This document shows, in pieces, positions 45,706 to 64,000 of a DNA stretch of 64,000 nt (within the stretch, counting starts at the first letter, position 1; each line of letters starts with the position of its first letter). The stretch lies in the IMG/VR virus record IMGVR_UViG_3300035181_000357, positions 62,001 through 126,000 of that record; one strand, 5' to 3'. A program made the position numbers and the translations under genes. The notes under the pieces were generated by a model that was given only the letters and a program-made list of their open reading frames with translations, was not told where the DNA came from and made no database searches.

Positions 45706-46617
45706 CTACTGCAGTTCTTCAGAAATATCATACGTTTCTGGGACAGAATCTTGAACCCTTATCTCTTCCAACTCTACTCTCTGGAGTAATGAAATACCAG
45801 AAGTATCTGAATTTGCACTTGAATCAAAAATTTGATCGATGATCCTTTTCTCTTCTCTTATAAAAGATGTCTCCATCAAAACCGGATCATCCTCTAAGAA
45901 GGATAGAGCTCTTAGACCACATCGCAGACTGTGATACTTCTTGTCATCACCACAACAGGTTTCTAACTCTTCCATGAAACCTTCTGCATCCTCTTTTGTC
46001 TTAGCTAGGAAAGTCATCCCAACCTTTCTACCATCCTCTATAATCTTATACTTTAACCACGACGTATCCATCGTAGTTATCCTTTGGGATTCCAGGATCT
46101 CAAACTGTTCCCTGATTCTTTCTCTTATAATATCTGAAGTGGAATGCATATACATCTCAGATGGGATAGGAGGATTCTTTGCCTGAACTTTCTTCAATTG
46201 GAGAATCAAAGAATATGTGTCTACCAGAGTTGGATCTTGATCTTTTGGTAAATTCTTTATCTCGAAAGAGAGTCTTGATTCCAACTCTTCCCTTGTCAAG
46301 AACAATAGAAGCATATCTCTTCGAAGTCTTGCATTAGGAAAGTCATACAAGTCATTAAATCTAGAGACTAGCTTATCTCTAACATCTTCTAGAGTTTTCT
46401 TTAGAAGACTACTATTTTTCAGTAGTAATTTTCGTCTATAGATTAGGTCATTTACTTTTGGAAATACGACATCTCGATAGTGAAGAGCTACACATTGAAG
46501 TGTTGTCTCTTTTATCTCTTTGCCTGAATCTAACCTAAATCTCAAACCAAACCTCTTCCTACTTAATACGGGATTAAGTATGACCTGTAGTACAAATTTA
46601 ATCGATTCAAACCTCAC
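45706..46617 (-). CDS. Orphan protein directly downstream of the structured RNA; candidate partner of the TnpB-like locus
   Basis: 303 aa, basic N-half, acidic C-terminus; no confident family. Confidence 0.55.
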   Translation of the reverse strand: MRFESIKFVLQVILNPVLSRKRFGLRFRLDSGKEIKETTLQCVALHYRDVVFPKVNDLIYRRKLLLKNSSLLKKTLEDVRDKLVSRFNDLYDFPNARLRRDMLLLFLTREELESRLSFEIKNLPKDQDPTLVDTYSLILQLKKVQAKNPPIPSEMYMHSTSDIIRERIREQFEILESQRITTMDTSWLKYKIIEDGRKVGMTFLAKTKEDAEGFMEELETCCGDDKKYHSLRCGLRALSFLEDDPVLMETSFIREEKRIIDQIFDSSANSDTSGISLLQRVELEEIRVQDSVPETYDISEELQ

Positions 46618-46626
46618 AATTTTAAA

Positions 46627-46846
46627 CTCTGAAGACCAGAGATTGCCTAGTATGCACCCAAGAGATAAGTCTCGGGGTTATTGATCAAACCCAGCTGGCT
46701 CACATACGTGGCCACTGTAAAGCCGCAGCAGCTTGGGAAAGAATCAACGATACAGACTTGTTGATTCCAACCACCTCCTTAGATACCACTCTTGGATATC
46801 CTCAGTTTGTTTAACTGAAACTTTGAATAAAGGAGACTCAATAACC
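46627..46846 (-). ncRNA. Multi-stem structured RNA (about 220 nt)
   Basis: Nested helices: 46676-84/46838-46, 46775-80/46830-35, 46741-48/46760-67, 46690-96/46730-37 plus small hairpins; G-U pairs favour minus strand. Confidence 0.65.
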
Positions 46847-46857
46847 AAATGGATCGT

Positions 46858-46877
46858 TTATTATGATTATTGTTATT
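46858..46877 (-). repeat. 20-nt exact copy of 48246-48265 (candidate guide)
   Basis: TTATTATGATTATTGTTATT on + strand at both positions. Confidence 0.95.
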
Positions 46878-46965
46878 TTCTTTCGACGTTGCGTTTGGGA
46901 CAAAGTCCTCAGCAGAACCAAGGATGAGTAGAGGGAGGCACCTTAGGTGCTTCTAATTCTGCATA
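46878..46965 (-). ncRNA. Candidate omegaRNA-like scaffold overlapping the 3' end of the TnpB-like gene
   Basis: GCAGAATTAG/TTGGTTCTGC stem enclosing GCACC-TAA-GGTGC, then GGAC-TTT-GTCC, then the 20-nt repeat. Confidence 0.45.
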
Positions 46966-48075
46966 TCCTAGTTCCATACACGAAGAAGCTAGAACCTGAC
47001 TTCTAAGCCTGTTCTTTCCTCTTCGTTTTGAGATGATACCAGTATCCTGGATAATCTTAAACGCGATAGCACCTTCCGCCTGTCGCGATCTCCCAATCCT
47101 TTTGATGATCATATCGATATCGTCAAGATTGTTCTTAGTGTCTTTCTTATGTTTACTAAGGAAGACGAATCTACAATTCTTAGAAATCTCTTTAAAAAGA
47201 GAATTAAGATACTTGTAGTGGTTCTTTCGAACCCTATCTGCTTTGACACTGATCTCTAATTCCTTACCGGTATCGAGGCTCAGAACCTTTATACTTAGAT
47301 GATCGTTGTCAGCAGCAATACCAATATCTAAGGAACCAGAAGGTGTAGTATCAGTTGCTTCGACGGATTTCAAGACCATATAATAATATCTGTGATCTCG
47401 TCTTACAACCTTTATACTCTTAACATCTGCCTTTTTAATACTGGATGGTATGGTTACAGAAGTTTTTAATTTCTGTAACCTGGTTTCTAGTTCTTTTATC
47501 AGGTTCTTGGTCTTGGTCTCATATCTACTAAATGTGATATGGATAGGATCTTCATCCTCTTCATAATCCCAAGACATCTTACTCAATCTCGAGGTCTCTA
47601 ATTCAGTCTTCGATTTCAATTCCATGCTAATCTTACTAAGTTTATTCTGTAAGATTCGTCTCGTTTTCCCAGTGGCTACATCAGAACGTTCCTGGTTTCG
47701 CTTCATTTCATAGCGTCTCTTGTTTTCGATTCGCTTCAGATTCAGATATTCGGTTTCAAGTTTCGTGTTCAGAGTTTTTAGTCTTTTGTCTGTTTTCGGT
47801 CGCAGGTGTCGTTGGGTGAGTTTACGTTTACGTTGGTAGTCTTTCAGGCATATCTCGACGATCTCTCTATCCCGTACTAACATGGAGGCTACATCTATGC
47901 ATAGCGCATTGGGTTCAGAAGAAAAAGATTCGGGGGTTAGGTTCTGGATTCGGCCACCAGAAGCGTCTATACCCACTAGACAATTCCACACCATTCTGTA
48001 GATCAAGAACTGCTGACCATAGTCGCCAGTTCTAACAAATGATCTTCTTACAACAGATGACATGAACAATCTCAC
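46909..48075 (-). CDS. Probable nuclease-dead TnpB/Cas12f-derived protein
   Basis: 388 aa, very basic; RMVWN helix, KSIKVVRRDHRYYYMV, DIGIAA..LSLDTGK, HYKYLNSLFKEISKNCRFVFLS, RSQVLASSCMELG..EAP occur in TnpB order with RuvC D/E/D apparently replaced. Confidence 0.5.
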   Translation of the reverse strand: MRLFMSSVVRRSFVRTGDYGQQFLIYRMVWNCLVGIDASGGRIQNLTPESFSSEPNALCIDVASMLVRDREIVEICLKDYQRKRKLTQRHLRPKTDKRLKTLNTKLETEYLNLKRIENKRRYEMKRNQERSDVATGKTRRILQNKLSKISMELKSKTELETSRLSKMSWDYEEDEDPIHITFSRYETKTKNLIKELETRLQKLKTSVTIPSSIKKADVKSIKVVRRDHRYYYMVLKSVEATDTTPSGSLDIGIAADNDHLSIKVLSLDTGKELEISVKADRVRKNHYKYLNSLFKEISKNCRFVFLSKHKKDTKNNLDDIDMIIKRIGRSRQAEGAIAFKIIQDTGIISKRRGKNRLRSQVLASSCMELGYAELEAPKVPPSTHPWFC

Positions 48076-48137: not shown

Positions 48138-48412
48138 TCCTGTATAGTAAGAACAACAAGGATGACCGTAACCTGTAACAACCTGTATTCTTAATAATTA
48201 TAATAGATAACTGATAATAAGTAACAATTATAACTTATAATGATGTTATTATGATTATTGTTATTAGGAATTAAGGACATGTTGTACACCTGTATCTAAT
48301 TGTTGTTGTAGCTGACAGGTTGTGTTCTCAATTTTGGACAATTTATACTTTCTGAATCATGTTTTTAAAGTCTCTCTATTACCAGGTACTTAAGAACACT
48401 TCATACACAGGT
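48138..48412. promoter_or_regulatory. Divergent control region and candidate replication origin
   Basis: Only strand switch in the window; about 80-nt AT-rich core 48187-48266; ACCTGT at 48171, 48181, 48288 and inverted ACAGGT at 48315, 48407. Confidence 0.55.
48246..48265. repeat. 20-nt exact copy of 46858-46877 (candidate target)
   Basis: Identical 20-mer, same orientation. Confidence 0.95.
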
Positions 48413-51124: not shown

Positions 51125-54370
<3,246 letters not shown>

Positions 54371-61573: not shown

Positions 61574-64000
61574 ATGGCAGATCAAATATTCCCAGTGAAA
61601 GTCCAAAAAGCTATAACCAGACTTCAACCTCCTGGTAGACCAGATATAGAGGCTACATTCCATAACTCTATGGAACAGGGGAGATTCTTAGAACGTCCTC
61701 TTGGTGACGCTATGTCTCAGTTAAAAGAGAGACAAAAAGATCTCCAAGAGAAGATTGACCAATATATGAATATGAACAAACTAGCTAATGATGGACAGTT
61801 TCCGGATTCTATTCGACCAGCCAAGTATGTTAAAGATGCTGTAGATATAGTAAAAGAAATACAGAAGTATACTCAAGAAGTTCTAAATGTAGTAAAAGCG
61901 ATAAACGAGACAATAGGAATGTATGTTTCGTTAAAGAATAATCTACAGGGTTATTTTCAAGAACGAATAAATGCACTAGCTACTCTCCTAAATGAGATAT
62001 GTAACTTCAATCTCCCATCTCTCCCATCTATTCCTAATTTCTTCGGGAACTTCACATTTGATGGGTTCAAATTCCCTAAAGGGCAGTTCACTTTTAAACT
62101 ATCTTTCGATAAGAATTTTGCGTTTGGACAATGCCGTCTTCGTGGTGGAGATATAGACATCTTCAGAAATTATCCAAAGACGATGGATTGGAATGGTATC
62201 CCATGCACTATCCCAGTCTACAGACCACCCCTTAGTGGTTATATCTATGTCAACGGGACTCCACAAAATGTTGGAACCATAAAAGATACCCCATACTATA
62301 CAGATTTTGACCCAAATACAGATTTCTATTCTGGATCAGGGTTCCCTGATCCTACTAAGATTGTTAGTGACTACCATATGGCAGTCGATCTCTATATTGA
62401 GAGGTTGGCTTCTCTAACAGAAATAATTTTCCCGATCCAGAATGTAGTAGATTCAAACTATGACCCAAATCTAATGGCTGGGTGGTTGATCTTAATCTCT
62501 AAGAACAGAAGTTTAAGACAAGGGCAGTGGCTACCTAGATTTCAAGAGTGTTATGACCAGTTTGTAGCTCCGTCTATCGCATACATAGAAACCAATGGTA
62601 TCGTCTGGAATAACAAACTAAATGGCCCTGGTCCTCGTGCTGGAGACATAAATATTCCACTGATTCCAATCTTGAAGAGTGGGAATGCTACAAGAGTAGG
62701 ACAGATACTCTGGATGTTGACGTTCCTGGAAACAGGGCTGATTGGGTATAATAGAAACAAGAATTTTGATATTTATCAGCTACAGACTGGTACAGATTTA
62801 GACTCTATGGTCAAGAACTACCTAGATCCTATAACAGGGGAGTCCACAGATTATGTACAGTACACAAGCAGCATCTCTGAGACTCTCGTTATCGCTTTAG
62901 ATTCTGGAGGCAAAGCACAGTATCCAACATCTATAGCAGTACCAAGACCACTATACAATACACTAGTATCTGTCATAACTAAGCTATCTGTTAAAATAGA
63001 TCAGGTTCCAACCTTCATAAGTCAGAGGCCAAAGTACAGATATGTGTATAGTAATTTCGGTGAACAAATAATCCTAGACAAATACTCTCAATACTGGAGG
63101 GAATTGGCTGATAACTGGAACACTCTAATAAGTTCAAATGATTATAATTCTAAATTCTTATTATCATATGAACAAGCTATTGAAGAGACGATAGATCCGC
63201 TGGGTACCAGGGTACTAGCTGCTACTATAAATCTAGATTGTGATACAAGATCCCATACCTGGACTCCAGCAACATACAAGCTACCAATTTTCATACAAGA
63301 TCCCCTAGAATTATACCCACCAACCAATGTAGTACCCAACGATGCAGCCTGGATCGGGGATGAACTTATAGAGGATAAGTATCTGTTGAGAGCGGATATT
63401 CAAGGTCTAGATCTAAATACAAAAATGACTATGATGCAGCTTAATAGAGCGTATAGTGTTCTACGCTCAAATACACAACAGATGATACAAGCGATCGATG
63501 CAACCATATCTGGAGCGAGTACGAGTTCTGTATCTGGGTTTAGTTATTCCCTTGAAACTCAGATAAATGATATACCACAGATAGGTTCAGATCTAGAATT
63601 TACAGTGATGGATTTTGATCAGAGTAACTACTATACGAATGGTGTTTCTTTCAAAATCACTAATCCAGGTGCCTACTCCTTGTCTACAAGTGTTACATTC
63701 CCAAATACAGATGTGGGAGTTAGAACTGTAACTGTGATCAAGAATGGTACTCAAATTCTAGATACAAAGCAATCCACACCAGGATCTGGTCCTGTAACAA
63801 TAGATCTTAATTTCACAGCTGATCTGCTAACAAATGATCAAATAAAAGTCAGAGTAACACATAGTTGCTTGGTACCACAAGATATTTCTGTTGCCTCATT
63901 TATAGGAACTCTGATTGGATCTGTTGGGGCAGTATCTCCAGGTCCTGGAACGACTACTACAACAGCTACTCAATTCACCATAATCACAACATCTACAATA
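61574..64000 (+). CDS. Partial baseplate/tail protein with C1q-like domain near the window end
   Basis: Not in ORF track (no stop in window). MADQIFPVKV...; near 63530-63920 LEFTVMDFDQSNYY..SFKITNPGAYSL...IKNG...NDQIKVRV. Confidence 0.6.
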   Translation, partial: MADQIFPVKVQKAITRLQPPGRPDIEATFHNSMEQGRFLERPLGDAMSQLKERQKDLQEKIDQYMNMNKLANDGQFPDSIRPAKYVKDAVDIVKEIQKYTQEVLNVVKAINETIGMYVSLKNNLQGYFQERINALATLLNEICNFNLPSLPSIPNFFGNFTFDGFKFPKGQFTFKLSFDKNFAFGQCRLRGGDIDIFRNYPKTMDWNGIPCTIPVYRPPLSGYIYVNGTPQNVGTIKDTPYYTDFDPNTDFYSGSGFPDPTKIVSDYHMAVDLYIERLASLTEIIFPIQNVVDSNYDPNLMAGWLILISKNRSLRQGQWLPRFQECYDQFVAPSIAYIETNGIVWNNKLNGPGPRAGDINIPLIPILKSGNATRVGQILWMLTFLETGLIGYNRNKNFDIYQLQTGTDLDSMVKNYLDPITGESTDYVQYTSSISETLVIALDSGGKAQYPTSIAVPRPLYNTLVSVITKLSVKIDQVPTFISQRPKYRYVYSNFGEQIILDKYSQYWRELADNWNTLISSNDYNSKFLLSYEQAIEETIDPLGTRVLAATINLDCDTRSHTWTPATYKLPIFIQDPLELYPPTNVVPNDAAWIGDELIEDKYLLRADIQGLDLNTKMTMMQLNRAYSVLRSNTQQMIQAIDATISGASTSSVSGFSYSLETQINDIPQIGSDLEFTVMDFDQSNYYTNGVSFKITNPGAYSLSTSVTFPNTDVGVRTVTVIKNGTQILDTKQSTPGSGPVTIDLNFTADLLTNDQIKVRVTHSCLVPQDISVASFIGTLIGSVGAVSPGPGTTTTTATQFTIITTSTI

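Follow-up and report, generated by a model that had tools for sequence, protein, structure and literature searches.

What kind of RNA lies between two orphan genes in the genome of a giant phage, and is it part of an RNA-guided system? The question arises from a window of 64,000 nucleotides (positions 62,001 to 126,000 of IMG/VR record IMGVR_UViG_3300035181_000357), in which a sequence-only reading had flagged positions 46627-46846 as a multi-branched RNA located between two orphan genes, and had considered that an IscB/IsrB-style arrangement might place one guide between two scaffolds. The viral record is 210.6 kb long with an estimated completeness of 69%, and DNA of near-identical strains occurs in sediment and microbial-mat metagenomes. 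All genes surrounding the element are on the minus strand. In the direction of transcription, the order is a 388-aa ORF (48075-46909), a noncoding stretch, a second ORF, and then genes for class II ribonucleotide reductase and GyrB. Neither of the two ORFs matches Pfam or PHROGs.

A conserved, folded RNA on the gene strand

The proposed RNA is real. The helices listed in the sequence-only reading are present on the minus strand, where P1 is formed by GGTTATTGA (46846-46838) paired with TCAATAACC (46684-46676), and P2 is formed by GTCTCCTT (46837-46830) paired with AAGGAGGT (46780-46773). P2 encloses two hairpins (46818-46802 and 46801-46781). The variable hairpin P3, GAATCAAC/GTTGATTC, spans 46767-46741, whereas P5 and P6 are located at 46675-46658 and 46641-46627, respectively. 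Thus, P1 closes a junction composed of the P2 domain, P3, and the P4 arm, and P5 and P6 follow. Taken alone, however, the region folds only modestly better than shuffled sequences (z = −2.1), and therefore the evidence is comparative rather than thermodynamic.

Both flanking proteins have a few homologs, all encoded on large contigs of uncultured phages with the same gene order. This yields six distinct versions of the locus: the window, the related loci L003 (identical to L004), L005, L006, and L007, and the distant L075. The fold is kept in all six known relatives, all of which are uncultured jumbo phages. In a five-sequence alignment of syntenic relatives, RNAalifold predicts 64 base pairs, with 94.6% of cells paired and 28 pairs exhibiting changes on both sides. 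In contrast, 500 column shuffles give 10.2 ± 2.4 such pairs (maximum 20), and sliding the partners by 1-3 columns gives only 1-4. Although these counts derive from a family of only six members and are therefore small-sample, L075 and L007 folded individually adopt the same architecture with different helix sequences (P1 in L075 is GUUUAUC/GAUAAAC). The strand is also established, because 44 G-U cells would be A-C on the opposite strand and the consensus energy is −50.5 for the gene strand versus −33.3 for the antisense strand. DNA sequencing runs from near-identical strains show no variants in the structured RNAs or in the 20-nt boxes described below.

Several details of the original description require revision. 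First, the conserved register of the fourth arm is CAAGCT (46735-46730) paired with 46691-46686, plus an inner hairpin (46717-46692), rather than the proposed CCCAAGCTG/CAGCTGGG. Second, the structure runs about 16 nt further than the position 46627 given earlier. A covarying lower stem around P6 (P6a; 46651-46642 paired with 46620-46611) takes in the “next GTG” of that description at 46617, where the mechanical ORF starts, and which is therefore not a start codon. The element, hereafter called RNA-B, thus spans 46846 to about 46611 (236 nt, with nine helices). Third, the claim that such a density of helices occurs nowhere else in the window is not correct, because a second conserved structure lies about 150 nt upstream, inside the neighboring ORF.

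In each of the six loci, the conserved coding frame of the downstream gene begins at a TTG or ATG codon preceded by a Shine-Dalgarno sequence. In the window, these are GGAAGAGG (46559-46552) and the TTG at 46545-46543, which give a 279-aa protein (45706-46545); the public gene call for this phage also uses the shorter form. RNA-B is followed by a variable spacer (46581-46610) for which no match to the phage genome was found, and then by a covarying hairpin (46580-46560) that abuts the Shine-Dalgarno sequence. No terminator-like site was found between RNA-B and the 279-aa gene, and thus RNA-B is taken to form the leader of this gene as well.

As had been proposed beforehand, the RNA was compared with known families. 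No Rfam family matched at gathering score across the whole window, and none matched RNA-B at E ≤ 10 in a search of 46450-47000, with HEARO, riboswitches, and ribozymes all covered. The permissive search yielded only chance-level hits outside the element. These include a subthreshold twister-P5 match (17.9 bits against a 37.6-bit gathering score, E 0.3) at 46927-46992 on the plus strand, opposite the upstream ORF, which overlaps a hairpin of the ORF-embedded RNA and which we treat as chance. No tRNA or tmRNA was detected. The similarity of TCAATAACCCC to IS200/IS605 ends and HEARO that had been proposed from sequence consequently has no computed support.

Pattern searches of IMG/VR proteins returned no additional family members, and an index of 5.8 billion clustered proteins and an exhaustive HMMER library search revealed only the six phage lineages. 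A scan of viral and metagenomic contigs with a conserved RNA motif produced 67 loci, but on nhmmer scoring all were chance hits outside the family. Elsewhere in these genomes, L005 carries an intein in GyrB and a DUF7487 gene inserted before gyrB (L005:11438-12972), and L075 carries inteins in genes at the ribonucleotide reductase position (L075:8302-12786), whereas the corresponding copies in the window have none. The relatives also share a divergently transcribed gene block that includes, at 51125-54370 on the plus strand of the window, a gene for a 1081-aa protein with a run of 11 glutamines near its N terminus, which looks like a tape-measure or internal virion protein.

A predicted TnpB-like protein, a second RNA structure, and a duplicated 20-nt box

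The upstream gene (46909-48063) most likely encodes a 384-aa protein starting at ATG 48063 rather than at the GTG at 48075, because its homologs begin at MSxVVRRS. An existing gene call for this phage is a truncated 222-aa form (P0001). An AlphaFold model built from the six-sequence alignment has a pLDDT of 74.7 and shows an N-terminal strand, helices, a long helical hairpin, a beta sheet, and a C-terminal RNase H-like domain. Although the model rests on a shallow alignment, its architecture is consistently TnpB-like across five structure libraries. The predicted fold thereby fits the TnpB architecture of WED, REC, and RuvC domains, usually with a zinc finger. A Foldseek comparison with PDB placed Cas12f first and found RuvC-type domains, and TnpB is the best full-length match in PDB. 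AFDB clusters, ESM-Atlas structures, and BFVD returned IS605 OrfB, TnpB, Cas12f-TNB, or giant-virus “transposase” entries, again over the full length, and a language-model feature search independently pointed to the same families. In contrast, Pfam, PHROGs, and PDB sequence-profile searches of both flanking proteins and their families gave nothing meaningful.

One distant family member (P0012) carries a CxxC...C..H zinc ribbon between the last strand and last helix of the RuvC domain, which is where the zinc finger of TnpB and Cas12f proteins sits. This feature is lost in five of the six members. In the family alignment, motif I is DIGIA in the window's protein, with D at the catalytic position (N in P0012), no conserved acidic residue follows strand 4 at the motif II position (S/N/S/S), and the motif III position is an invariant Ser. 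Thus, an intact D-E-D triad is not present and the nuclease is probably dead, although these equivalences were inferred from secondary structure and not from a residue-level superposition.

The 3′ part of this ORF is unusually conserved at the nucleotide level. Identity of codons at matching residues is 0.76-0.80 at residues 317-346, compared to about 0.35-0.55 over the first 300 residues. This stretch folds into a three-way junction (47094-47027) that is kept in all six genomes with compensatory changes, including in L075, where the encoded protein differs. Over the entire region 47094-46878 (minus strand), which we call scaffold A, five sequences give 63 pairs, of which 12 show double changes, compared to 6.7 ± 1.8 in shuffles and 2-4 in slid controls. 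This signal is weaker than that for RNA-B, as expected under coding constraint. Scaffold A also includes two long stems, a covarying hairpin next to the stop codon (46908-46898), the motif CCAAACGCAA (46898-46889), and an 11-nt linker. Scaffold A and RNA-B share no significant sequence similarity, and neither has a second copy in the 210-kb record.

A 20-nt box, AATAACAATAATCATAATAA (box 2; 46877-46858), lies between the two structured RNAs, 31 nt after the stop codon of the TnpB-like ORF. Its only other exact copy in the 210.6-kb record (box 1; 48265-48246, minus strand) is located 182 nt upstream of the TnpB-like start codon. Every relative carries a pair at the same two places, and the two copies are always identical to each other while their flanks are unrelated. 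The variants are AATAATAATAATCATAATAA in L006, AATAATAATAACAATAATAA in L007, and a 24-nt form with an insertion in L075. Among the six genomes, these make five or six changes, all present in both copies and none in only one. Only box 1 has a conserved 5′ flank (48266-48270), which reads TTCCT, TTCCT, TCCCT, TAATT, TTCTC, and TTCTC in the six genomes. In addition, all six genomes have a perfect TTATAAT 33-43 nt downstream of box 1 (about 48197-48203 in the window) within a very AT-rich stretch, where degenerate inverted copies of the box are also present in several relatives, and most have a TGnTATRAA-like element 15-16 nt upstream. These sequences may represent a promoter, an operator, or neither. 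A generic promoter scan did not exceed chance.

Box 2 is separated from P1 of RNA-B by a linker (46847-46857) whose length is 11-12 nt in five of six genomes and 8 nt in L075, while its sequence is only loosely kept. The distance from the scaffold-A motif to P1 is 42-43 nt in five of six genomes (39 nt in L007), whereas other noncoding spacers of the locus vary from 44 to 106 nt and from 91 to 346 nt. This argues that RNA-B is physically or functionally coupled to the unit containing the box rather than being an independent neighbor. Pairing of the box with the 5′ strand of P1 is possible in three genomes only, and we rejected it as coincidence. A search for the box in 185,579 species genomes returned 49 scattered hits with no common context, and thus no host target emerged.

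Possible roles of the folded RNA

Our analysis establishes the fold and strand of RNA-B, the TnpB-like fold predicted for the upstream protein, the second structure embedded in its ORF, and the box pair whose copies change together. The mechanism that follows, including guide function, RNA and DNA binding, loss of nuclease activity, and gene regulation, is inferred from sequence and predicted structure. Our preferred, although tentative, explanation is that RNA-B belongs to a phage-domesticated, TnpB-derived (OMEGA-type) module. In this view, the operon is transcribed from the box-1 region, and scaffold A plus box 2 would form an omega-RNA-like guide RNA that is bound by the probably nuclease-dead TnpB-like protein. 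Box 2 would pair with box 1 in the module's own promoter region, with TTCCT as a TAM-like flank, and so would autoregulate the operon, whether negatively or positively, in the manner of TldR or dCas12f regulators. RNA-B would then be a 3′ structured extension of the guide RNA that also serves as leader of the always-adjacent 279-aa gene. It may delimit and protect the 3′ end of the guide, stabilize the downstream message, or, most likely, serve as a docking or regulatory platform linking the 279-aa protein to the complex. Guide RNAs that target the promoter of their own locus (PMC13472631) and phage-borne dead TnpB regulators (10.1101/2023.11.30.569447) provide precedents.

A further possibility, which we consider unlikely but which the data do not exclude, is that the locus produces a natural “scaffold RNA,” in which one transcript holds a 20-nt guide between two different structured domains. 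The ORF-embedded domain would load the dead TnpB-like protein, whereas RNA-B would recruit the 279-aa protein. Pairing of the guide with box 1 would then bring a second, unrelated effector to a defined DNA site. Such an RNA would be a natural counterpart of engineered aptamer-extended guide RNAs, with a layout not described for any TnpB, Cas12, or IscB system.

The strongest competing explanation, although it also seems unlikely, is that RNA-B is itself the omega-RNA-like scaffold of the TnpB-like protein and carries a guide in the variable 30-40 nt after P6a. The box would then not be a guide but a dedicated promoter or operator, present once in front of the protein gene and once in front of the RNA gene, so that both are expressed together. 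Guide RNAs of TldR and dCas12f indeed lie just downstream of their genes (PMC13472631; 10.1101/2023.11.30.569447), RNA-B is large and multi-branched like omega RNAs, and the segment after P6a is the most variable part among distant relatives. Furthermore, P1 starts 11-12 nt after the box, which contains CATAAT, making a transcription start at the foot of P1 plausible. However, no target for the presumed 3′ guide was found in the 210-kb phage record or in the loci of the relatives, no conserved −35 element accompanies the box, and the promoter scan does not exceed chance. This reading also leaves the covarying ORF-embedded structure and the conserved stop-codon hairpin and motif unexplained, and a protein-read operator would have to coevolve perfectly at both copies.

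Less likely still, RNA-B could be an ordinary cis-acting leader of the 279-aa gene that senses a ligand, protein, or temperature or stabilizes the mRNA, independently of the TnpB-like protein and the box. This would be consistent with its location directly upstream of that gene in all six genomes, the lack of an intervening terminator-like site, and the hairpin abutting the Shine-Dalgarno sequence. However, no Rfam riboswitch or leader matches, the predicted helices do not sequester the Shine-Dalgarno sequence, and the largely constant distance to the box and scaffold A points to coupling. The size of RNA-B is also much more than a stabilizer needs.

The IscB/IsrB-style interpretation, in which box 2 is a 5′ guide for RNA-B as the scaffold of the downstream protein, is not supported and we consider it very doubtful. 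The order of box, scaffold, and gene matches IscB loci and the distance from box to P1 is largely kept. However, there is no HEARO match, and the 279-aa protein has no RuvC, HNH, or PLMP signal, no Pfam, PHROG, PDB, or atlas relation, no RNase H-like strand order in its predicted secondary structure, and no confident fold (model pLDDT 45.6). In IscB and Cas9 the guide abuts the scaffold, whereas here 8-12 poorly conserved nucleotides intervene. Moreover, the conserved flank of box 1 is on the 5′ side, which is the TnpB/Cas12 polarity. Because TnpB uses a scaffold followed by a 3′ guide, the guide-like box by that polarity probably belongs to scaffold A and not to RNA-B as a 5′ guide. Thus, the sequence-only interpretation is partly supported: an OMEGA-type context and a guide-like element between two structured RNAs are present, but the OMEGA-like protein resembles TnpB. 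Finally, although the boxes flank the TnpB-like gene as direct repeats, a passive relic, such as a duplication made when this gene inserted, with RNA-B as an unrelated phage small RNA, is highly improbable because passive copies would drift apart, whereas every change is shared by both copies in six genomes and the locus is fixed in synteny.

Relation to known RNA-guided regulators

The closest known systems are TldR proteins (TnpB-like nuclease-dead repressors) and their guide RNAs, including phage-borne fliC_P-tldR loci (10.1101/2023.11.30.569447; 10.64898/2026.09.22.753285). As in those systems, a predicted TnpB-type fold with a degenerate RuvC site is carried by a phage outside a transposon, a structured RNA adjoins the 3′ end of the gene, a guide-length sequence matches a putative promoter-region site with a conserved 5′ flank, and an accessory gene is co-conserved. 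However, there is no detectable sequence similarity to any TnpB or TldR profile, and the resemblance therefore rests on predicted fold and locus layout and not on placement in a described TldR clade (fliC_P, oppF, csrA). The host is a jumbo phage from sediment and microbial-mat metagenomes, the predicted target is the locus's own upstream region rather than a host gene, and a 236-nt structured RNA follows the putative guide.

Canonical TnpB-omega RNA systems of IS200/IS605 and IS607 elements (e.g., PDB 8h1j and 8exa) provide the best full-length structural match, and, as in those systems, a putative RNA scaffold overlaps the 3′ end of the ORF and is followed by a roughly 20-nt element at the guide position. 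In contrast, the phage locus has no TnpA and no transposon ends, the record contains no PF07282 match, and the locus is single-copy in 210 kb and occupies the same syntenic slot in six diverged phages, such that it is not a mobile IS element. The catalytic E and second D are absent, a second copy of the “guide” lies upstream of the gene, and sequence conservation at the scaffold-guide junction is weak.

The dCas12f-sigmaE RNA-guided transcription systems (PMC13472631) combine a dead miniature type V/TnpB-like protein, a single guide RNA, and a co-conserved partner protein, as is proposed for the phage locus. Some of those loci carry target sites upstream of themselves for autoregulation, and same-strand ncRNAs of unexplained role are associated with target sites there too. 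However, the 279-aa family gives no signal of an ECF sigma factor partner, with no sigma-70 region 2 or 4 hit, or any other hit, even at E ≤ 10, and those guide RNAs are 85-105 nt long and have no 3′ domain. IscB/IsrB systems with HEARO omega RNA share a large multi-helix RNA upstream of a gene with a guide-length element 5′ of it, and they differ in the protein, the covariance model, and the linker as described above.

Domesticated, nuclease-dead TnpB and Cas12f proteins have only recently been recognized as natural RNA-guided transcription factors, and the known examples come from bacteria and temperate phages and were found through sequence similarity to TnpB. The locus described here is best viewed as a very diverged phage form of TnpB-derived RNA-guided regulators, whose unusual feature is a second large structured RNA 3′ of the putative guide. 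It would extend this principle to a lineage of jumbo phages, with a protein so diverged that only its predicted fold and the layout of its RNA locus reveal the ancestry, and with six family members among 5.8 billion clustered proteins. It also offers a compact, self-contained test case, because the putative guide and target, the protein, a second large structured RNA, and a partner protein of no recognizable family all lie within 2.7 kb. If the guide is indeed flanked by two functional scaffolds, this is a new guide-RNA architecture and a possible natural route for recruiting effectors through RNA.
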